This document shows, in pieces, positions 2,647 to 23,469 of a DNA stretch of 64,000 nt. The translations under genes were made by a program, and so were the position numbers. Each line of letters starts with the position of its first letter. The stretch's first letter is position 1. Under the pieces are notes generated by a model. The model saw only the letters and a list, made by a program, of their open reading frames with translations. It searched no databases and was not told the origin of the DNA. Origin of the DNA: Obrimoposthia wandeli (lineage: Eukaryota); the NCBI GenBank assembly GCA_977020255.1, contig CDROCS010000253.1:4278001-4342000 (forward strand). The letters are read 5' to 3'.

Positions 2647-3450
2647 TTAATAAGTTAGCTGTTCAATAGCAACTGCGCAGGCTCTTAGTGCTGGTAAAAT
2701 AGTCGTTAATACTTGCTGTTTCGTTGTTTGCGAAATATGCGTACTGATACTTAACGCACCAAGAACTTTTCCGGCTTGATTTCGTACCGGTACCGAAATA
2801 GAGGTTAGACCTAGCTCTAATTCTTGTTCTACTAAAGAATAACCTTGCTGATTTACTTGCGCAATTTCTGCTGTTAACTCCACTTTGTTAGTGAGCGTGA
2901 AGGCAGTATATTGCTCCACTCGACAGCTTGTTAAAAAGTCATTTAATGCTTTACCTGTCATATCGGCCAACAGAACACGACCTAAAGATGTCGCAAAGGC
3001 AGGTAAGCGAGTACCCACATTCAAACTAACAGACATAATTCGTTTAGTGGTAGCAACACGTCCTACATAGACAACATCTTCACCTTCTAATACTGCTGCC
3101 GAGCATGACTCATTGAGTTGCTCAACTAACTGCTGCATTAAAGGTTTTGCGTTCTGCCAAACATCTTGAGAAGCGAGGTAAGCAAAGCCTAAATTAAGTA
3201 TTTTTACCGTTAACGAAAACTGCTTCCCCTCTTGTTTGGCATAACCTTCACTTACTAAAGTCAGTAAAAAACGCCTTGCTGCTGCTCGCGTATAACCTGT
3301 GGTAGTAGCAACTTCAGATAGTGTCATCGTCGGTCTGTGCTGATCAAAGGCCTGAATAACCATCAAACCCTTAAGTAAGGATTGTACGATTTCGGATGAT
3401 TTGATCATAACTTGATCATCATCATGTTTTCCTTGTTCTTGCTTTGACAT
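2647..3450 (-). CDS. pcaR: IclR-family regulator, PcaR/PobR type
   Basis: VQSLLKGLMVIQAF, TLSEVA..TGYTRAAARRFLLTL, RLPAFATSLGRVLLA; divergent from pcaIJ. Confidence 0.88.
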   Translation of the reverse strand: MSKQEQGKHDDDQVMIKSSEIVQSLLKGLMVIQAFDQHRPTMTLSEVATTTGYTRAAARRFLLTLVSEGYAKQEGKQFSLTVKILNLGFAYLASQDVWQNAKPLMQQLVEQLNESCSAAVLEGEDVVYVGRVATTKRIMSVSLNVGTRLPAFATSLGRVLLADMTGKALNDFLTSCRVEQYTAFTLTNKVELTAEIAQVNQQGYSLVEQELELGLTSISVPVRNQAGKVLGALSISTHISQTTKQQVLTTILPALRACAVAIEQLTY

Positions 3451-3474
3451 TGAATTATCTCAAACCTACAATAA

Positions 3475-3561: not shown

Positions 3562-4347
3562 ATGATAGATAAAAGAGTGGCAAGTTGCGCCAGTGCAGTT
3601 ACCGATATAAAAGATGGCGATACCGTAATGATTGGTGGTTTTGGTGAAGCAGGCAGTCCGATAGAGTTAATTCACGCATTAATAGATCATGGAGCAAAAA
3701 ACTTAACCGTCATTAATAACAATACCGGTAGTGGTCGAGTAGGTTTAGCTGCCCTGATTGAAAATGGTCAAGTGGCTAAAATGATCTGCTCCTATCCGCG
3801 CACTGCTAATTCTCTCGTTTTTCCAGAACTGTATCGCAGTGGTAAAATTGAACTAGAGCTTGTTCCACAAGGTACGTTAGCCGAACGCATTCGGGCTGGT
3901 GGCGCTGGAATTCCTGCTTTTTTCACTAAAACGTCAGTCGGAACGCCGCTTGCAGAGGGCAAAGAACGCCGAAATTTTGAGGGCGATGACTATGTTATGG
4001 AACGTAGCCTAAAGGCTGATTTCGCTCTTATCAAAGCCAAGCAAGCTGACCGATACGGTAATTTAACCTATAACAAAACTGCCCGTAACTTTGCACCAAT
4101 TATGGCCATGGCGGCAACAAGAACCTTAGTGCAAGTCAATGAAATGGTTGAATTAGGGGATCTTGATCCCGAAAACGTCATTACCCCCGGCATATTCGTT
4201 AATGCGTTAATTGAGGTAACACAACCACAACAAGAGTCTCAACTGGTGAAAAACGGCATTACCTATCCAGAAGTAAAAGCACCTGCAACAAAGACCTCCA
4301 CAATAAATAGCCTAGAAAAAATAAACTCAGGAGCAACACAAGCATGA
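3562..4347 (+). CDS. pcaI: 3-oxoadipate CoA-transferase subunit A
   Basis: MIDKRV, DGDTVMIGGFGEAGSP, NNTGSG, LVPQGTLAERIRAGGAGIPAF; ATGA overlap with subunit B. Confidence 0.88.
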   Translation: MIDKRVASCASAVTDIKDGDTVMIGGFGEAGSPIELIHALIDHGAKNLTVINNNTGSGRVGLAALIENGQVAKMICSYPRTANSLVFPELYRSGKIELELVPQGTLAERIRAGGAGIPAFFTKTSVGTPLAEGKERRNFEGDDYVMERSLKADFALIKAKQADRYGNLTYNKTARNFAPIMAMAATRTLVQVNEMVELGDLDPENVITPGIFVNALIEVTQPQQESQLVKNGITYPEVKAPATKTSTINSLEKINSGATQA

Positions 4348-5087
4348 GCCAAGTAGCAAAAAAACAAAACCTCGAGGCAACAACTCAAATTGGCTGGAAC
4401 CGAGAGCAAATGGCACAACGCTGTGCACAAGATATTGAAGATGGCAGCTATGTAAACCTTGGCATAGGTATTCCTGAAAAAGTCGCTCAATATGTTCCTG
4501 AGGGTAGAGAGGTTATCTACCACACAGAAAATGGTTTACTTGGCATGGGTAATTCTCCCTCTGATGAAGAGCTTGATGCTGATTTAATCAATGCCGGTAA
4601 AAAAGCGGTAACGGCAATTCCTGGTGCCTCATATTTTCATCACGGTGACAGCTTTGCCATGATCCGCGGCAATCATATAGATGTTTGTGTACTCGGGGCA
4701 ATGCAAGTCTCAATGAAAGGAGATTTAGCCAATTGGTCGACCGGCGCTGTTGATGCGATTCCTGCCGTAGGTGGTGCTATGGACTTAGTGGCTGGCGTTA
4801 AAACCATCTACATTATTACCCAACATACCACTAAAACAGGGGCAGCTAAAATATTGCCTGAATGTACTTTCCCGCTCACCGGACAGAAGGTTGTTAATCG
4901 AATTTATAGTGATTTATGTGTGATTGATGTCACCGAAAACGGTTTAGTGCTTATGGAGCTAGCGCCCGGCATTAGCTTTGACTATGTACAAGAACGCACA
5001 GGGGTAGCACTGCTTAATGGACTCTCAACAAAAAGTAACATAGCAGATAATCATATCGTTAACACCACACATAAGGCGCAGCAGTAA
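4344..5087 (+). CDS. pcaJ: 3-oxoadipate CoA-transferase subunit B
   Basis: YVNLGIGIP, catalytic HTENG, GAMQVS, VGGAMDL. Confidence 0.88.
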   Translation: MSQVAKKQNLEATTQIGWNREQMAQRCAQDIEDGSYVNLGIGIPEKVAQYVPEGREVIYHTENGLLGMGNSPSDEELDADLINAGKKAVTAIPGASYFHHGDSFAMIRGNHIDVCVLGAMQVSMKGDLANWSTGAVDAIPAVGGAMDLVAGVKTIYIITQHTTKTGAAKILPECTFPLTGQKVVNRIYSDLCVIDVTENGLVLMELAPGISFDYVQERTGVALLNGLSTKSNIADNHIVNTTHKAQQ

Positions 5088-6397
5088 TGGTAAATAAAAG
5101 CGAAAAACTATTTAATAAAGCACTGAAGGTATTACCTGGCGGTGTTAGTCGTAATACTATTTTTAGAAAGCCCTATCCATTTTACGCTGATAAAGGTGAA
5201 GGCTGTTATGTTACCGATGTAGAAGGTATAACTCGCATCGACTTTGCTAACAACATGGCCTCATTGATTCATGGTCACGCCTACCCTGCAATTGTTGAAG
5301 CCGTATCAGCACAGCTAGCTAAAGGCAGTTGTTTTACCATGGCAACCGAAGCTGAAGTTAACTATGCTCAGCTGTTATGCGACCGAGTACCGAGCTTTGA
5401 TAAAATTAGATTTGTTAACTCGGGCACCGAAGCGGTAATGGCAATGTTAAAAGCATCGCGTGCCTATACAGGTAAAGCTAAAATAGCCAAAGTTGAAGGT
5501 GCTTACCATGGCGCTTACGATTATGCTGAAGTAAGCCAAACAGCAAACCCAAGTAACTGGGGAGAACTTGATAAGCCAAATAGCATCCCAGTAGCCGAAG
5601 GTACACCACCAAAAGCATTAGAAGATGTTGTGGTAATACCTTTTAATGATCCTGAACGAGCGATTAAGATTTTAGATCAACATAAAGATGAAATCGCCTG
5701 TATTTTAGTTGATTTATTACCTCATCGAGTTGGCTTAATTCCCGCCAGCAATGCTTTTATTAATGCGCTACACCAGTGGACCCGTGATAATAAATCACTG
5801 TTAGTATTCGATGAAGTTATTACCTTTAGAACTAATTACAGTGGTGCTCAACAAAACTATGATGTTACGCCAGACTTAACCGCGCTGGGAAAAGTTATTG
5901 GTGGTGGTTTCCCCGCAGGTGCCTTAGCAGGTTGTGATAAGGTGATGAAAGTACTCGACCCAACGGAGCCAAAAGTTTTATTACCTCACTCAGGCACTTT
6001 TTCGGCCAATCCAATTACTATGACAGCAGGTTTAGCCGCCATGAAAGACTTTGATCAAGCAGCAGTTATCAAGCTTAATCAGCTTGCCAGTTATGCTAGA
6101 AAAGCGATTACTCAGGCCATAGAGGAGGTAGGTATCAATGCTTGTGTAACAGGTGCCGGCAGTATGTTTAGAATACATCTAAAAGCACAGCCACCTAAAA
6201 ACTACCGTGAAAGCTATGTTGATAAAAAAGAAAGCCAATTAATCACTAAATTACTCGATCATTTATTCGATAATGGCATTATGATGATAAATACTTGCAC
6301 AGCAGCGTTATCAACCGCGATGAGTGAAAAAGAAATAGATCATTTAGTCTGTGCACTAAAAGATGGCTTTGAACTAATAAAGCCAGAAATGGCATAA
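5087..6397 (+). CDS. Class III PLP aminotransferase, GSA-aminomutase-like fold, probably a beta-amino-acid transaminase
   Basis: LPGGVSR, FVNSGTEA, GAYHG, FDEVITF, ALGKVIGGGFPAG (PLP Lys), HSGTFSANP; lacks HemL SPVRAF; TAATG overlap with pcaJ. Confidence 0.85.
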   Translation: MVNKSEKLFNKALKVLPGGVSRNTIFRKPYPFYADKGEGCYVTDVEGITRIDFANNMASLIHGHAYPAIVEAVSAQLAKGSCFTMATEAEVNYAQLLCDRVPSFDKIRFVNSGTEAVMAMLKASRAYTGKAKIAKVEGAYHGAYDYAEVSQTANPSNWGELDKPNSIPVAEGTPPKALEDVVVIPFNDPERAIKILDQHKDEIACILVDLLPHRVGLIPASNAFINALHQWTRDNKSLLVFDEVITFRTNYSGAQQNYDVTPDLTALGKVIGGGFPAGALAGCDKVMKVLDPTEPKVLLPHSGTFSANPITMTAGLAAMKDFDQAAVIKLNQLASYARKAITQAIEEVGINACVTGAGSMFRIHLKAQPPKNYRESYVDKKESQLITKLLDHLFDNGIMMINTCTAALSTAMSEKEIDHLVCALKDGFELIKPEMA

Positions 6398-6413
6398 CAG
6401 GCTTTGTTATGCC
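6391..6413 (+). other. Stem-loop spanning the aminotransferase stop codon, no U-tract
   Basis: GGCATAACA-ggctt-TGTTATGCC, 9-bp stem. Confidence 0.45.
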
Positions 6414-6581: not shown

Positions 6582-7799
6582 ATGAGAGACGTATACATCT
6601 GTGATGGTATTCGCACGCCGATTGGAAAATATGCAGGCGCTTTATCATCTGTTCGCGCTGATGACTTAGCAGCAATTCCACTTAAAGCATTAAAAGACAG
6701 AAACCCAACATTAGATTTAACCCAAGTAGACGATGTTATTTTAGGCTGTGCCAACCAAGCAGGTGAAGACAATCGTAACGTCTCTCGTATGGCGCTTTTG
6801 TTAGCGGGTTACCCTACCCAAGTAGCAGGTTGTACCATTAATCGTTTATGTGGCTCAGGTATGAATGCCATTGCAATAGCGACAAATGCTATTAAAGCTG
6901 GCGAGGCTGAAATGTTAATTGCTGGCGGTGTTGAAAGCATGTCGCGCGCACCTATGGTAATGGCGAAAGCTGAAAGCGCTTTTTCACGTAACGCTGAATT
7001 ATTCGATACCACGTTAGGCTGGCGTTTTGTTAATCAAAAATTACATACCGCCTATGGCACAGATTCTATGCCTGAAACCGCAGAGAATGTTGCTGAGCAA
7101 TTTGGTATTAGCCGTGAAGCTCAAGATAAATTCGCTTTTGCTAGTCAAAGTAAAGCCAAAGCAGCACAAGATGATGGTCGATTTGCCGAAGAAATAGTCC
7201 CTGTGATTATCCCGCAGCGCCGTGGTGATGATATTGTTGTTGAAAAAGATGAACACTTACGTCTTAGCTCGTTAGAAAAGCTAGCAACTCTCAAAGCACC
7301 TTTTAGAGAGGGCGGCTCAGTCACCGCAGGTAATACCTCTGGCGTAAATGATGGCGCTGCAGCCGTTATTCTTGCCAGCAAAGAAGCGGCCTTAGCCAAT
7401 GGCTTAACGCCAAAAGCGAGAATACTTGGCTCTGCTGTTATTGGTGTTACCCCTGAAATTATGGGTATTGGCCCAGCGCCAGCGAGTGCCAAACTGCTAA
7501 AACGTTTAGGTCTGAGCATTGATGATATGGACATTATTGAGTTCAACGAAGCTTTTGCTGCACAGGCGCTTGCCAGTGCCCGTGAATTGGGTCTTGAAGA
7601 TGATGACGTACGTTTAAACCCACAAGGTGGTGCCATTGCTCTGGGTCATCCATTAGGCATGAGTGGCACACGTTTATTAATCACAGCAACGAAACAGCTT
7701 GAGCGCAGTGGTAAACGTTATGCACTCTGCGCTATGTGTGTTGGTGTTGGCCAAGGCATTGCTATGGTCATTGAGCGATATAGTGAGAATGTACAATAA
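6582..7799 (+). CDS. pcaF: 3-oxoadipyl-CoA thiolase
   Basis: GCANQAGEDNRNVSRM, NRLCGSG, GGVESMSRAP, NEAFA, GAIALGHPLG, MCVGVGQG. Confidence 0.92.
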   Translation: MRDVYICDGIRTPIGKYAGALSSVRADDLAAIPLKALKDRNPTLDLTQVDDVILGCANQAGEDNRNVSRMALLLAGYPTQVAGCTINRLCGSGMNAIAIATNAIKAGEAEMLIAGGVESMSRAPMVMAKAESAFSRNAELFDTTLGWRFVNQKLHTAYGTDSMPETAENVAEQFGISREAQDKFAFASQSKAKAAQDDGRFAEEIVPVIIPQRRGDDIVVEKDEHLRLSSLEKLATLKAPFREGGSVTAGNTSGVNDGAAAVILASKEAALANGLTPKARILGSAVIGVTPEIMGIGPAPASAKLLKRLGLSIDDMDIIEFNEAFAAQALASARELGLEDDDVRLNPQGGAIALGHPLGMSGTRLLITATKQLERSGKRYALCAMCVGVGQGIAMVIERYSENVQ

Positions 7800-7851: not shown

Positions 7852-7889
7852 AAAAAGGGAGACTAATTATTAATTAGCCTCCCTTTTTT
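7852..7889. terminator. Bidirectional intrinsic terminator (pcaF / nudC)
   Basis: AAAAAGGGAG-ACTAATT..AATTAGC-CTCCCTTTTTT. Confidence 0.8.
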
Positions 7890-18136: not shown

Positions 18137-19333
18137 TTAAATTGCTGCCATTTTTTTACTTGTATTAACAAACTGGCTTGCCGCTAAAGAGAGTAACGCG
18201 ATAAATGCACCCGCATAAAACACCAACGAATGATCATATAACCAAATTAGGCCAAAGGTCGCTGGAATAACAACGGCGGCAATATGATTAATACTAAAAC
18301 TGACTCCTGCACTTGAAGCAATATCTTTTGGATCCGCTATTTTTTGAAAATAAGTTTTCAACGCAATGGCCATAGCAAAAAACAAATGGTCAATCACATA
18401 AAGCACCGCAGCTGCATTGGCCGATTCAACTAATGCATAACCAACAAAAATAGTAATTAAACCTAGATACTCTAAAGTCAGCGCTTTACGCTCGCCAACT
18501 TTAGCAATCCAAAGGCCTATTTTAGGCGCTAAAAAGAAGTTAATTACATGATTAATCATATACAGCACTGTGATTTGTTGAACACTGTAACCAAACTTTT
18601 CTACCATCAAAAAACCAGCGAAAACAACAAATATCTGTCGACGAGCTCCCGCTAAAAAGGTCAACAAGTAATACAAACTATAACGTTTTCTTAATATGAT
18701 TTTTTTGTGTTGTGCATGTTCCATAGGGAATTTAGGCATAGCAAACGCCAACCATAGCGTTAGTAGTAAACCACTTAAACCAAAAAACAAATACATCACT
18801 TGGTAGCTGGCAGAAAAAATACTAAAGCCCAACCAAATTAGGGCATAACAAGTTAATGAAGCGGCAGACTTTATTGACATTAATTGACCAAGCTTTGCTG
18901 CTGCTTCATCTTTTTTGAACCACTGTAGGCTTAATGAGGTATTTAAGGTTTCGTAATAATGAAAGCCGATAGACATTAACACCGTTGTTGCATACAGCCC
19001 GTAAATACTAGGGAACAACCCTGTAATCGCCACACCAATGGATAACAAACACAAAGAAATTAAAGCAAATACTTGTTCGGTAAATACCAACAACACAAAA
19101 ATTGCAGTGAATGCTAAGAAGCCAGGAATTTCTCTTAAAGACTGCAATATGCCTATTTCAGCACCAGTAAAAGCAGCTTGCTCAATAACAAAATTATTGA
19201 GCATAGCCATCCAACCGGCAAAGGTAATTGACGTAACCATGCTGGCAATAGCTAAGAAAAAAAAAGGACTATGCCATTTATTATTTTGTGCGGTTAAAAG
19301 TGTCGACGCATTTTCCGTACTTACTTTATCCAT
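18137..19333 (-). CDS. MFS transporter
   Basis: 12 hydrophobic segments, LQSLREIPGFLAF, ARRQIFVVFAGF. Confidence 0.85.
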   Translation of the reverse strand: MDKVSTENASTLLTAQNNKWHSPFFFLAIASMVTSITFAGWMAMLNNFVIEQAAFTGAEIGILQSLREIPGFLAFTAIFVLLVFTEQVFALISLCLLSIGVAITGLFPSIYGLYATTVLMSIGFHYYETLNTSLSLQWFKKDEAAAKLGQLMSIKSAASLTCYALIWLGFSIFSASYQVMYLFFGLSGLLLTLWLAFAMPKFPMEHAQHKKIILRKRYSLYYLLTFLAGARRQIFVVFAGFLMVEKFGYSVQQITVLYMINHVINFFLAPKIGLWIAKVGERKALTLEYLGLITIFVGYALVESANAAAVLYVIDHLFFAMAIALKTYFQKIADPKDIASSAGVSFSINHIAAVVIPATFGLIWLYDHSLVFYAGAFIALLSLAASQFVNTSKKMAAI

Positions 19334-19499
19334 ACTGATCCCTGCTCTAAATACTAATACTGTGTTACTGGCAATTGGTTTTAAATTAGGTACTAAGTGC
19401 CAAAGAAATAATAGCTCTCCAAGTTATCTTCTGAAGATCAGCTTGTGTCGCTAGAGTGGTCATTATATGATGATTTTAACATGACCAATAGCAACAATT

Positions 19500-20306
19500 A
19501 TGACAGTTAGTTTATCAATTCAGACAAAATCTACTTGGGATCAACAACCCCCTAGTCGACACTATGATGTTCTACCTCGGTCTGTAGTGCCGTTGTCTAA
19601 AGAATTTAAAGCGATGACACAAATAACTAATCACAAACATACTTGGTCACAGCTGGCCTATTCTTGTTCAGGAATCATGCATATTGAAACTGACTCAGGC
19701 ATTTTTGTTATTCCTCCTGAACAGGCGCTGTGGATTCCTCCAAACGTAAAACATCAACATTTTTGTAAAAATAAGGTCAGTTACCGTAGCCTACATATAG
19801 ATGCCAAGTTAAGTGAAATATTAGGTAATAAAGTACGACCATTGTCAGTTGATCCCTTATTGAAGTCACTGATATTAGAAATATCAAATTGGCCTACAGA
19901 TTACCCTGAAACGGACCAGACACAGCGTTTTATTCTAGTGTTATTAGACCGCTTAGCGATAGCAAAAAGCAACGAACTTTTTATGCCTACAATTCAAGAT
20001 AAACGACTATTACCTATCATTGAAACTCTTAATCAAGAGCCCGCGAATAAATTAACAGTAGAACAATGGGCACTTAAAGTAGGTGCATCAAGTCGCACCT
20101 TAAATAGATTATTTAATCAAAATTACGGTATGGGCTTTAGCCGATGGAAACAGAAACTGAGAATATTAAAGTCATTAGAATTACTTAATAGCAACTCGCG
20201 AATTGTAGATATTGCCTTTGAGTTAGGTTATGAATCAACGTCGGCATTTATTACCGCTTTTAAAAAACACTTAGGTTGCTCACCTAAAAAATACCTTGCT
20301 AAGTAG
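19500..20306 (+). CDS. AraC-family regulator (cupin + double HTH)
   Basis: HKHTWSQL, PPEQALWIPPNVKH, SSRTLNRLF, FELGYESTSAFITAFKK. Confidence 0.92.
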   Translation: MTVSLSIQTKSTWDQQPPSRHYDVLPRSVVPLSKEFKAMTQITNHKHTWSQLAYSCSGIMHIETDSGIFVIPPEQALWIPPNVKHQHFCKNKVSYRSLHIDAKLSEILGNKVRPLSVDPLLKSLILEISNWPTDYPETDQTQRFILVLLDRLAIAKSNELFMPTIQDKRLLPIIETLNQEPANKLTVEQWALKVGASSRTLNRLFNQNYGMGFSRWKQKLRILKSLELLNSNSRIVDIAFELGYESTSAFITAFKKHLGCSPKKYLAK

Positions 20307-20425: not shown

Positions 20426-22147
20426 CTACTGCGTTAATCTATTCGTTAACGCTGCCGCTAAATCATGCTCAATAGTGGCAAGTTCATCTTCAAAGAAGAA
20501 CTTATCGGTATCAAACGGTTTAAGTAATTTCACATCGTTGGTGGTTTCATCGTATTTAGCTAAAAACACTTTGTCCATCCACTTCATGTTGCGCCCTTCG
20601 GTGAACATCAAAGCAAAGGCTCGTTCTCCGCCAACATCACATTCTCCCATAATCGAGATTTTACCCGCAGAAGTGGTCATAGACAGATGACGAGATGGGC
20701 GGTTAATCGATGGTAATTCACGGTATATTTTATCAAATATTTGACTAACGACACTAAGCGGCGCAGTGAAATAATGATGTTCACCGGTTGGTCTTGCGCA
20801 ATACATAGAATGAAAACTGATTAACATAGTCCCTAAAATATTAGCTAAATCTATCCAATTTTGTGCGCTGCGATCTATATCGATTGAGCCATCTTTATGC
20901 TCAAATAAACTGATATGATTCATCATCGGACTTTGACTACGAATAACCACACCGTGACGTTGCAAGCGACGAATAGCGGCAATAGTGGTTGGGTTTAATA
21001 ATTCTCGCGGTGTAGAGAAATGCGCCATCCATGCCAGTTGAATACCATTTTCATGCATTTTATCAAATACGGCTAACATCTTGTCGTACTTACGACTTAA
21101 AATCATTTCCGGTTGGAAGGTTAACGCACGTGTAGCAAGGCGAACCGTTTTAATGTGTAATAACTCTCGGTCTTCCATTAACGGCGTAATATATTGCTCA
21201 AAGCGACTCGCGGGCATGTAACCACCATCGCCACCGGTAATAAGCATATCAGTGACTTCTTTATGTACCTTTAAGTAACGATGAATTTGATCTATTTCTT
21301 TTTGGATAAACATATCTTCATCACCACGAACTTGCGCATGACGGAAACAATAAGTACAAAATGAAAAACAGTTTTGGGTAGTTTTATCAAAAATTAACTG
21401 ACACTGAGGGTATTTATGCTGACTACCATCAAGAAACTCGATTTCACCCTGCTCGTTTTCAAACCAAGGTTTATTAAGTTGTTGGTTTCCATCGTGAGGA
21501 CTGGTTTTTTCTTGGTAATCAGTAACAATGATTTTCTTCTCTTGTAAGTTAGCGACTAAGTATTCAGCCACGGTAACTTTGTTAATCATATTAGGTTGTG
21601 GCATCACTAACTGAAAAACAGAATCTTCATAAAAGTTAGTCCAGTCAATGCTATTTAAACTGTGCTTAGTCGCTAAAAATCGGTAAACCTCAATAAAGAG
21701 TTCCCGCTCTTCAATATCACCAATATCAATATTATTAGCTTCAAGTATTTCTACCACGTGGCGAAAGCCTGAAAGCCCAGTGTATTGATCTTTCTCATCG
21801 AACATATGGGCTGCTTTATCTAGTAAGCCCGAATGCTGTGGGTAAGACGCATGTAAGCGGCTGAGTAAACCCGGTGACAGTAGCTTTTCATCTTTAATCG
21901 TTTTACGAACGTCATCACTGTAGTGATATACATCCATCATATCGTTAATATCAATTTCGCTGACATCACTAATACCGTTTTTTAGACCATGGATATTACC
22001 AGTTAGTACTGAGCTATAAGACTGACAAGCACTTGAGTCAAGCTCTTTTGTATTAGTTTTATTTGGATCAACTATAGCGACATCAATATACTTTACTTTA
22101 GTTGTTGAATTTTTACTCGCTGAAACTTTATATGCGGAGTTGGTCAT
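20426..22147 (-). CDS. KamA-family radical-SAM/PLP amino-acid 2,3-aminomutase
   Basis: QHKYP, CFSFCTYCFR (CxxxCxxC plus Arg), LITGGD, AHFSTPREL, RSQSPMM, SAGKI (PLP Lys). Confidence 0.85.
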   Translation of the reverse strand: MTNSAYKVSASKNSTTKVKYIDVAIVDPNKTNTKELDSSACQSYSSVLTGNIHGLKNGISDVSEIDINDMMDVYHYSDDVRKTIKDEKLLSPGLLSRLHASYPQHSGLLDKAAHMFDEKDQYTGLSGFRHVVEILEANNIDIGDIEERELFIEVYRFLATKHSLNSIDWTNFYEDSVFQLVMPQPNMINKVTVAEYLVANLQEKKIIVTDYQEKTSPHDGNQQLNKPWFENEQGEIEFLDGSQHKYPQCQLIFDKTTQNCFSFCTYCFRHAQVRGDEDMFIQKEIDQIHRYLKVHKEVTDMLITGGDGGYMPASRFEQYITPLMEDRELLHIKTVRLATRALTFQPEMILSRKYDKMLAVFDKMHENGIQLAWMAHFSTPRELLNPTTIAAIRRLQRHGVVIRSQSPMMNHISLFEHKDGSIDIDRSAQNWIDLANILGTMLISFHSMYCARPTGEHHYFTAPLSVVSQIFDKIYRELPSINRPSRHLSMTTSAGKISIMGECDVGGERAFALMFTEGRNMKWMDKVFLAKYDETTNDVKLLKPFDTDKFFFEDELATIEHDLAAALTNRLTQ

Positions 22148-22488: not shown

Positions 22489-23469
22489 ATGAATTATCTA
22501 CCTAAAGAAAGACCTCAATCTAAAAAGTTATTACCCAGTACCAGTATGTTGGCCGCCTTTGATGCTGCTGCCAGAACAGGCAGTTTTACTGCTGCAGCAA
22601 AAGAACTGGCGTTAACTCAAGGGGCTATTAGTCGACAAGTAAATGCGCTAGAACAACAGCTAAACGTTAATTTATTTCATCGTAATAAACAGAATATATC
22701 GCTTACCGAAGCCGGAAGAAACTACGCTAAAGAAGTAAACTTGGCATTAAGTCATATTCGTTCAGCAACGCTTAACCTCATGACAAATCCCGATGGTGGC
22801 ATACTTAACCTTTCTATATTGCCCATGTTTGGCTCCCGCTGGTTAATGCCAAGGTTGGCTGACTTTTTAGCTCAACATCCAAAGATCACCATTAATACGG
22901 TTAGTAAGTTGTCACAATTTGACTTTTCTCATGAGGATATTCATTGCGCCATTCATTTTGGTAACGCTGATTGGTCACAAGCCAATTGTACTTTTTTAAT
23001 GGCTGAGGAAAGTGTTCCGGTATGTTCCCCTAAGCTGTTCAAACAAGCGGAGTTGGCAAAAACTGATAATGTTTGTGCAAGTTTAATCCATTTACCATTA
23101 TTACATATCGCCACCAGGCCTAATGCTTGGCAGTTGTGGTTTGATGATCACAACGTCATTTCAAAAACTAAATCAAAAACAAAAACAAAGTCAGAGCCGA
23201 AGTCAAAAGCACTGCAAGACATGCATTTTGAACAATTTTCCATAGCAACTAATGCTGCTGTCGCCGGTCTTGGCGTAGCATTATTACCACGCTTTTTGAT
23301 TGAAAATGAATTACAACGAGGCGAATTACAGATAATTTGTAACAAGCCCCAACGTACCGATAACGGCTATTACTTAGTAACGCCCAATGACAAACTTAGC
23401 TACGCCCCTATATTAGCTTTTACTCGCTGGCTAACCCAAGTGATCGCGAGTGAAAAGCTTCCTGTTTAG
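22489..23469 (+). CDS. LysR-family regulator, GcvA-like
   Basis: LPSTSMLAAFDAAARTGSFTAAAKELALTQGAISRQV, PMFGSRWLMPRL; divergent from the aminomutase. Confidence 0.9.
   Translation: MNYLPKERPQSKKLLPSTSMLAAFDAAARTGSFTAAAKELALTQGAISRQVNALEQQLNVNLFHRNKQNISLTEAGRNYAKEVNLALSHIRSATLNLMTNPDGGILNLSILPMFGSRWLMPRLADFLAQHPKITINTVSKLSQFDFSHEDIHCAIHFGNADWSQANCTFLMAEESVPVCSPKLFKQAELAKTDNVCASLIHLPLLHIATRPNAWQLWFDDHNVISKTKSKTKTKSEPKSKALQDMHFEQFSIATNAAVAGLGVALLPRFLIENELQRGELQIICNKPQRTDNGYYLVTPNDKLSYAPILAFTRWLTQVIASEKLPV

Follow-up and report, generated by a model that had tools for sequence, protein, structure and literature searches.

Several described systems come close to parts of the locus reported here. 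Kat, the 3-aminobutyryl-coenzyme A (CoA) aminotransferase of an alternative lysine fermentation (EC 2.6.1.111, Candidatus Cloacimonas acidaminovorans), is a thiolase-linked enzyme of lysine catabolism in anaerobes that resembles HemL, the glutamate-1-semialdehyde 2,1-aminomutase (GSAM), was once mis-annotated as hemL, and accepts only CoA or N-acetylcysteamine (NAC) thioesters (PMC3149608). StoTA, an omega-transaminase of Sphaerobacter thermophilus, acts on a broad range of free β- and γ-amino acids and is proposed to hold the substrate carboxylate with R36 (PMC10589169). The β-phenylalanine aminotransferases VpAT and MesAT (structures 4AO9 and 2YKU) have the same class-III fold, and R41 of VpAT is ionically bonded to the substrate carboxylate (PMC9850050). 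The fourth parallel is a whole set of genes, the lower branch of the β-ketoadipate pathway (PcaR-PcaIJ-PcaF). We have analysed a 64,000-nucleotide (nt) stretch of DNA, hereafter the window (positions 4,278,001 to 4,342,000 of contig CDROCS010000253.1, here C253, in assembly GCA_977020255.1, listed under Obrimoposthia wandeli), in which a class-III aminotransferase gene, here called AT (5087..6397, plus strand, 436 amino acids (aa)), stands between genes of the PcaIJ and PcaF types. C253 (4.68 Mb) is a Colwellia contig inside a very large multi-organism assembly, and the AT protein is 97% identical to one in Colwellia demingiae ACAM 459.

From the observed gene order, family assignments, conservation and linkage we infer a substrate, an order of steps and an inducer. 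AT would be a pyridoxal phosphate (PLP)-dependent β-amino-acid aminotransferase whose physiological substrate is free 3-aminoadipate (β-homoglutamate), a reading of the sequence to which we assign a probability of roughly 0.58. In the proposed pathway, a KamA-like aminomutase encoded elsewhere in the window (20426..22147, minus strand) would shift the C2 amino group of L-2-aminoadipate to C3, yielding 3-aminoadipate; AT would transfer that group from C3 to a 2-oxo acid, either 2-oxoglutarate or pyruvate, leaving 3-oxoadipate; the PcaIJ-type CoA-transferase would convert 3-oxoadipate to 3-oxoadipyl-CoA; and the PcaF-type thiolase would turn the latter into succinyl-CoA and acetyl-CoA. The wider proposal, of a widespread, oxygen-independent and undescribed route for lysine-derived 2-aminoadipate that combines a new aminomutase (in two subfamilies) and a new β-transaminase family with PcaIJF-type enzymes, has in our judgement slightly better than even odds. 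No description of a route joining aminoadipate, an aminomutase and 3-oxoadipate was found in the full-text literature, which leaves most subscription journals outside and is not proof of novelty.

The operon and its HemL-like aminotransferase

The genes for the two subunits of a 3-oxoacid CoA-transferase overlap by 4 nt (subunit A, PcaI/ScoA family, 3562..4347; subunit B, PcaJ/ScoB family, 4344..5087; both on the plus strand), and the TAA stop codon of subunit B (5085-5087) shares one base with the ATG start codon of AT (5087-5089). A preliminary description of the window had read this TAATG junction as translational coupling to pcaJ and had placed AT between pcaJ and pcaF; the coordinates of the open reading frames and the family scores bear out both the junction and the gene order. 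Downstream of AT, after a spacer of 184 nt, lies a 3-oxoadipyl-CoA thiolase gene of the PcaF type (6582..7799, plus strand), and divergent from the operon is a gene for an IclR-type regulator of the PcaR/PcaU/PobR family (2647..3450, minus strand). The likeness to the lower branch of the β-ketoadipate pathway is that the regulator (TIGR02431, 302 bits against a cut-off of 284.75; Pfam HTH_IclR and IclR_C), both transferase subunits (A, TIGR02429, 354 against 128.5; B, TIGR02428, 305 against 243.6) and the thiolase (TIGR02430, 669 against 597; NF006551, 680 against 605) all pass curated cut-offs. The best solved relatives of subunit A are succinyl-CoA:3-ketoacid CoA-transferases.

The term 'pcaIJF operon' used in the preliminary description does not fit as the name of an aromatic-catabolism operon, since neither PcaH nor PcaD was found on the contig. 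PcaH had no candidate on C253 (catA was not searched for) and the best PcaD match there reached 58 bits against a cut-off of 256; the assembly search scores best candidates only, and such absences mean 'not found' rather than proven. This is where the locus departs from the β-ketoadipate pathway: no protocatechuate/catechol upper branch was found on the contig, and 3-oxoadipate would derive from an amino acid.

Contigs that are 90-99% identical to portions of the AT, thiolase and transferase genes occur in two marine metatranscriptome runs of a single study; one of them, 879 nt long, extends from the 3' end of AT into the thiolase across a spacer that differs and measures 191 nt. This is weak evidence, compatible with co-transcription of AT and thiolase in a related strain.

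AT matches Pfam PF00202 (1.8e-56). Its best NCBIfam matches are hemL models, yet it remains under all hemL cut-offs (341.8 bits against 527.3 for the equivalog TIGR00713; 341 against 398 for PRK00062), and the contig has a true hemL of its own (C253:624021, 641 bits). A maximum-likelihood tree puts AT together with twelve distant homologues in a 100/100 clade, whose long stem measures 4.3 changes per site; eight HemLs, Kat and a second Colwellia paralogue fall outside it. When AT, whose residues 16-32 read LPGGVSRNTIFRKPYPF, is aligned with the contig's own HemL, it has PGGVSRNT, with SRNT in place of the NSPVRAF that ends HemL's GGVNSPVRAF motif, and SPVRAF is absent. The HemL residues 'YE', including the counterpart of GSAM Glu406, fall in a 2-residue gap of AT; Glu406 is tied to the special chemistry of GSAM, and the enzyme ForI likewise has no equivalent of it (PMC6927412). 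In sum, AT shares fold and length with HemL, its best-scoring curated family, but has another N-terminal motif, no Glu406 equivalent and scores under the cut-offs, in a genome with a hemL of its own. The preliminary description had noted the missing SPVRAF and had warned that the gene would probably be mis-annotated as hemL, and on both points it was correct: many JGI records call close homologues 'glutamate-1-semialdehyde 2,1-aminomutase'. The NCBI name for them is 'aspartate aminotransferase family protein'.

AT was compared with all solved structures, and its relatives among them, StoTA, ForI, MesAT and VpAT included, were ranked by phmmer score. StoTA comes first (6K8H; 2.9e-119, 402 bits, end-to-end alignment) and ForI second (6SSD; 2.2e-101, 343 bits), while HemLs of solved structure score about 190-240 bits, and MesAT, VpAT and D-phenylglycine aminotransferase about 180-187 bits. 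Judged by score, AT stands closer to StoTA and ForI, and even to the HemLs, than to VpAT and MesAT, a correction to the preliminary description. Its suggestion of an N-terminal motif like that of VpAT and MesAT survives for the carboxylate-binding arginine. R22 of AT aligns with StoTA R36, is invariant in 60 distant family members, and corresponds to VpAT R41, because the four substitutions S17P, T38V, Y47T and N70E, which adapt StoTA to the aromatic β-transaminase motif, fix the register to VpAT (PMC10589169, PMC9850050). The aromatic-binding part of that motif is not retained: the aromatic binders V43 and Y76 of VpAT and the supporting E75 are T24, M57 and N56 in AT, which is therefore not an aromatic β-phenylalanine transaminase.

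AT and StoTA have the PGGxxR motif in common, as well as identical T/Y/N departures from the aromatic β-transaminase motif, but only about half of the residues are identical by eye, Ser and Tyr stand at the positions of AT R214 and M57, and StoTA was assayed on mono-carboxylic substrates only. In ForI, Arg23 and Trp206-Arg207 line the pocket beside the cofactor (PMC6927412), and these positions align with R22 and H213-R214 of AT; ForI differs in being a secondary-metabolite enzyme of the formycin pathway, with a heterocyclic substrate that is still unconfirmed and another gene context. Among the 60 distant members, 122 positions of AT are at least 97% conserved, including R22, H213-R214, R248, K269, R362 and R374; K269 is the catalytic lysine, invariant and part of the sequence GKxIGGGFP. 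The two invariant arginines near the substrate site, R22 and R214, would fit a dicarboxylate. AT is most likely a class-III β-amino-acid transaminase, and it appears to be a new specificity variant within the HemL-like β-transaminases of this class.

A second HemL-like class-III aminotransferase on the Colwellia contig (G000:C253:2216629-2217954; L101:5629-6954), which scores 345 bits to the hemL model, is very divergent from AT, HemL and Kat. It follows genes for a betB-like aldehyde dehydrogenase, a betA-like glucose-methanol-choline (GMC) oxidoreductase, a BCCT-like protein, a Gcw_chp protein and a MarR regulator, and is possibly linked to choline or betaine-type amines.

A cassette in about ten phyla and its linked aminomutase

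A scan of a genome collection for AT returned 80 loci, 14 of them in Colwellia/Litorilituus with the same IclR-transferase-AT-thiolase layout; the IclR regulator is kept beside the cassette in all of these. The other 66 loci encode AT proteins of 62-71% identity and come from about ten phyla or comparable groups, namely Gammaproteobacteria, SAR324, Desulfuromonadales and other Deltaproteobacteria, Cloacimonadota, Bacteroidota, Planctomycetota, Acidobacteriota, Chloroflexota and Actinomycetota. Taxonomy is not mirrored in the AT family tree, a pattern that suggests horizontal movement of the cassette.

Among the distant loci, counted only where enough flanking DNA was available, genes for CoA-transferase A and B lie directly upstream of AT in 60 of 62 (subunit A being 64-80% identical to that of the window), and a thiolase gene is present in 41 of 60, adjacent and on the same strand in 38. 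In 51 of 56 a KamA-like gene of either ~480 or ~535 aa stands ahead of the transferase genes. AT is directly preceded by the aminomutase, with no adjacent transferase, in two loci of Anaerolineae. Nine cassette thiolases from distant loci were scanned, and eight of them clear the cut-off for 3-oxoadipyl-CoA thiolase. All seven full-length ones on the AT strand, from Desulfuromonadales, Cloacimonadota, Bacteroidota, Deltaproteobacteria, Acidobacteria, Photobacterium and Motiliproteus, pass the PcaF equivalog (661-690 bits against 597), and an eighth is cut off by a contig end. A classical aromatic β-ketoadipate operon that carries AT as a passenger gene is rejected on this linkage of AT, transferase and thiolase in about ten phyla and on the search of the contig, where PcaH and PcaD were not found.

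Genes that form 2-aminoadipate from lysine flank the cassette in 11 loci belonging to three lineages. They include an L-piperideine-6-carboxylate (P6C) dehydrogenase gene that immediately precedes the aminomutase gene (799 and 807 bits; cut-off 730), and, in Cloacimonadota and delta-type loci, a saccharopine-dehydrogenase-family protein and an LKR-like protein of alanine-dehydrogenase fold, accompanied by an amino-acid permease.

Two other neighbours recur. Three Motiliproteus loci have a class-I/II aminotransferase (PF00155) after the cassette thiolase (L040:8600-10018, L042:8602-9999 and L034:8658-10007); it might interconvert 2-oxoadipate and 2-aminoadipate, providing another entry to the route. 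A small thioesterase of 4HBT fold is encoded just before the aminomutase in five distant loci (L040, L042, L057, L075 and L032).

The cassette aminomutase occurs in two forms, U535 in 35 loci and rSAM483 in 16. The window gene at 20426..22147 was found by searching the assembly with the U535 protein of Cloacimonadota, whose gene directly precedes the cassette there, and its product is 62% identical to that protein. Pfam sees almost nothing in either form, while NCBIfam places both in the KamA family of radical S-adenosylmethionine/PLP 2,3-aminomutases, although the window protein reaches only 71 bits against 199 for TIGR00238, and 43-66 bits against cut-offs of 369-650 for the specificity equivalogs (lysine, glutamate and arginine aminomutase, and EpmB). 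The CxxxCxxC motif (C260/C264/C267), a GGD motif (G305-G306-D307) and K496 are invariant in both subfamilies. A conserved N-terminal stretch of ~190 aa, unmatched in Pfam, is present in U535 proteins and absent from rSAM483 proteins. Since the open reading frame in the window is ~37 residues longer than its homologues, the start of the gene is uncertain and probably lies downstream of the first ATG. By these sequence comparisons U535 and rSAM483 would represent two new KamA-like subfamilies outside the characterised specificity groups.

A profile of both forms aligns to lysine 2,3-aminomutase (LAM) 2A5H at 1.6e-29. At the position of LAM Asp293, which we take to contact the ε-ammonium group of lysine, both forms have an invariant arginine (Arg452 of the window enzyme), and this exchange of Asp for Arg points to a substrate with a distal carboxylate. 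The alignment ends at LAM residue 313, before Asp330 and Lys337, and K496 is named as the PLP lysine from its invariance only. The window enzyme may accordingly be called a putative 2-aminoadipate 2,3-aminomutase.

Divergent from the window aminomutase is a gene for a LysR-type, GcvA-like regulator (22489..23469, plus strand; Pfam HTH_1 and LysR_substrate; PRK11139, 257 against 288), and many distant loci likewise have a LysR gene diverging from an aminomutase-led cassette. In C. demingiae the same two loci, the AT operon and the aminomutase, lie ~8 kb apart on one contig. Of 121 genomes sampled from the same family-level group, only 2 have an AT orthologue, and both carry an aminomutase of cassette type, one a U535 form nearby and the other an rSAM483 form on another contig.

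Ten of these 121 genomes from the Colwellia family-level group (e.g. G359:C1:1497317-1498516) carry members of a third KamA-like group, of 450-500 aa and 35-40% identical to the window aminomutase, and have no AT orthologue. The aminomutase gene of the window has as direct neighbours, at 18137-20306, an AraC-type regulator gene on the plus strand and, on the minus strand, a gene for a major facilitator superfamily (MFS) transporter, a candidate substrate importer.

Substrate and order of steps

Three observations favour a C6 diacid as the compound handled by the cassette: the cassette thiolases are of the PcaF type, whereas that of Kat is of the acetoacetyl-CoA type; the recurrent extra genes make 2-aminoadipate from lysine; and the regulator belongs to the family of PcaR, which responds to β-ketoadipate, in a setting where the classical source of 3-oxoadipate was not found. 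The preliminary description had already guessed at 3-aminoadipate or a similar β-amino diacid, and the guess of 3-aminoadipate has gained support from the PcaF-type thiolases in distant phyla, the charge-reversed pocket of the aminomutase and the 2-aminoadipate-forming neighbours in 11 loci. A free acid is favoured over a CoA ester because AT keeps the carboxylate-binding arginine, because its nearest characterised relative uses free acids, because the transferase is of the 3-oxoacid type, and because free 3-oxoadipate is implied by a regulator of the PcaR type. The PcaR-like regulator would probably switch on the transferase-AT-thiolase operon of Colwellia in response to 3-oxoadipate.

Several points weigh against this reading. 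The choice of 3-aminoadipate is guilt by association, argued from gene context only; β-glutamate or another acidic β-amino acid is possible as the substrate of AT, and PcaF-type thiolases also take other 3-oxoacyl-CoAs. 3-Aminoadipate was not found as an established natural metabolite in the searchable literature, where one match for the name is a misprint for α-aminoadipic acid. Linkage is incomplete, with 5 of 56 distant loci having no linked aminomutase and about a third no linked thiolase, and the ninth thiolase scanned, a convergent one from Planctomycetota, scores just below the PcaF cut-off (575 against 597). In the window itself the aminomutase lies 14 kb from the AT operon under a different regulator. 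The metatranscriptome evidence consists of assembled contigs, for which carry-over of DNA is possible. Finally, no P6C dehydrogenase over the cut-off was found in Colwellia-type genomes, and no homologue of the Cloacimonadota saccharopine dehydrogenase was found on C253. With neither enzyme found, a route from lysine to 2-aminoadipate was set aside for Colwellia; as the simplest guess, this Colwellia may take up 2-aminoadipate.

The alternative that survives best, though we hold it to be unlikely, is that AT acts on some other β-amino acid, be it β-glutamate (through glutamate 2,3-aminomutase chemistry), 3-aminobutyrate, 3-aminopimelate or a broad range of compounds, with the keto product passing to the transferase and thiolase. 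It draws on the breadth of StoTA, the closest characterised relative (PMC10589169), on the arginine at the LAM Asp293 position, which fits any acidic amino acid, glutamate included, and on the lack of recognisable 2-aminoadipate-forming enzymes in Colwellia. It is at odds with the thiolases, which are PcaF equivalogs and not acetoacetyl-CoA thiolases in most of the phyla scanned, and with the recurrent extra genes, which encode P6C dehydrogenase and saccharopine-pathway enzymes rather than enzymes of glutamate. Furthermore, the tight conservation of the AT family, with at least 62% identity and 122 near-invariant positions, argues for one defined substrate. The β-glutamate route in particular is a minor rival, with the PcaF-type thiolases and the neighbouring P6C dehydrogenase genes speaking against it.

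A reversed order of steps appears more doubtful still. Here the CoA-transferase would first activate 3-aminoadipate, and AT would then turn 3-aminoadipyl-CoA into 3-oxoadipyl-CoA, much as Kat does with 3-aminobutyryl-CoA. Kat itself is the precedent, a HemL-like transaminase that takes only CoA or NAC thioesters (PMC3149608), and the CoA-transferase genes do precede AT in the cassette. However, AT is only 29% identical to genuine Kat and keeps the carboxylate-binding arginine of the free-acid β-transaminases, within an SRN motif that is absent from Kat. The transferase is of the 3-oxoacid family, the PcaR-type regulator suggests free 3-oxoadipate as an intermediate, and the two Anaerolineae loci pair aminomutase and AT with no adjacent transferase.

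That AT is itself an orthologue of Kat is very improbable. AT is HemL-like, stands beside a thiolase and an AtoDA-like transferase, and has homologues in Cloacimonadota and Bacteroidota, the phyla where Kat was found. The genuine Kat gene could be located because the published forward primer for CLOAM0809 has one exact match, in a single 2.25-Mb genome among 232 of Cloacimonadota; the gene (L098:7860-9104, 414 aa) is 29% identical to AT, whereas Kats are 60-65% identical among themselves (PMC3149608). The thiolase beside it scores as the acetoacetyl-CoA type, and Kat falls outside the AT clade. Kat also differs from AT in having no SRN motif, in its specificity for CoA esters and in acting downstream of the β-lysine/3,5-diaminohexanoate route rather than a saccharopine/2-aminoadipate route; of the lysine-fermentation genes that form the context of Kat (kamA, kamDE, kdd and kce), neither kce nor kdd is among the recurrent neighbour clusters of the AT cassette loci. 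On identity, thiolase type and position in the tree, orthology is rejected at the sequence level.

Least credible of all is a second HemL, an isozyme that happens to lie in a pca operon: hemL models are the top NCBIfam matches and JGI names homologues accordingly, but AT scores far under all hemL cut-offs, lacks SPVRAF and a Glu406 equivalent, forms a separate clade, shares its contig with a true hemL, and keeps its linkage to transferase, thiolase and aminomutase across phyla, Cloacimonadota included.

Were the route through free 3-aminoadipate correct, it would make 3-aminoadipate a genuine metabolite and would be a fourth bacterial way to dispose of 2-aminoadipate, free of O2, bypassing 2-oxoadipate dehydrogenase and glutaryl-CoA dehydrogenase and yielding succinyl-CoA and acetyl-CoA. 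It would explain orphan pcaIJF genes in marine heterotrophs and in anaerobes (for instance Cloacimonadota, Desulfuromonadales and Planctomycetota), and would give such genes a role in anaerobic bacteria and in bacteria that do not degrade aromatics. It would also give the HemL-like transaminases a new substrate specificity, correct a systematic mis-annotation (hemL, 'aspartate aminotransferase family') and supply a function for two unassigned subfamilies of KamA-like aminomutases. The enzymes could then be useful as biocatalysts for β-amino diacids and adipate-related chemistry.

Possible expression signals around the operon

The best match of the region in a consensus scan for promoters is a site of the form TTGACA-17-TACAAT upstream of CoA-transferase A (3444..3472, plus strand; 11 of 12 positions); it is no more than a consensus match, and sites of this kind are in total no more numerous than expected from shuffled sequence. 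A terminator scan found a 17-bp hairpin flanked by an A-run and a T-run (7852..7888), between the convergent thiolase and nudC genes, that is likely a bidirectional terminator, and it found no plus-strand terminator-like site between AT and the thiolase. Overlapping the stop codon of AT at 6391-6413 is a perfect 8-bp inverted repeat, GGCATAAC...GTTATGCC, with a 7-nt loop and no T-run after it, possibly a processing or stability element. The spacer between AT and thiolase in the distant loci is mostly <150 nt and typically 20-60 nt, against the 184 nt of this Colwellia.

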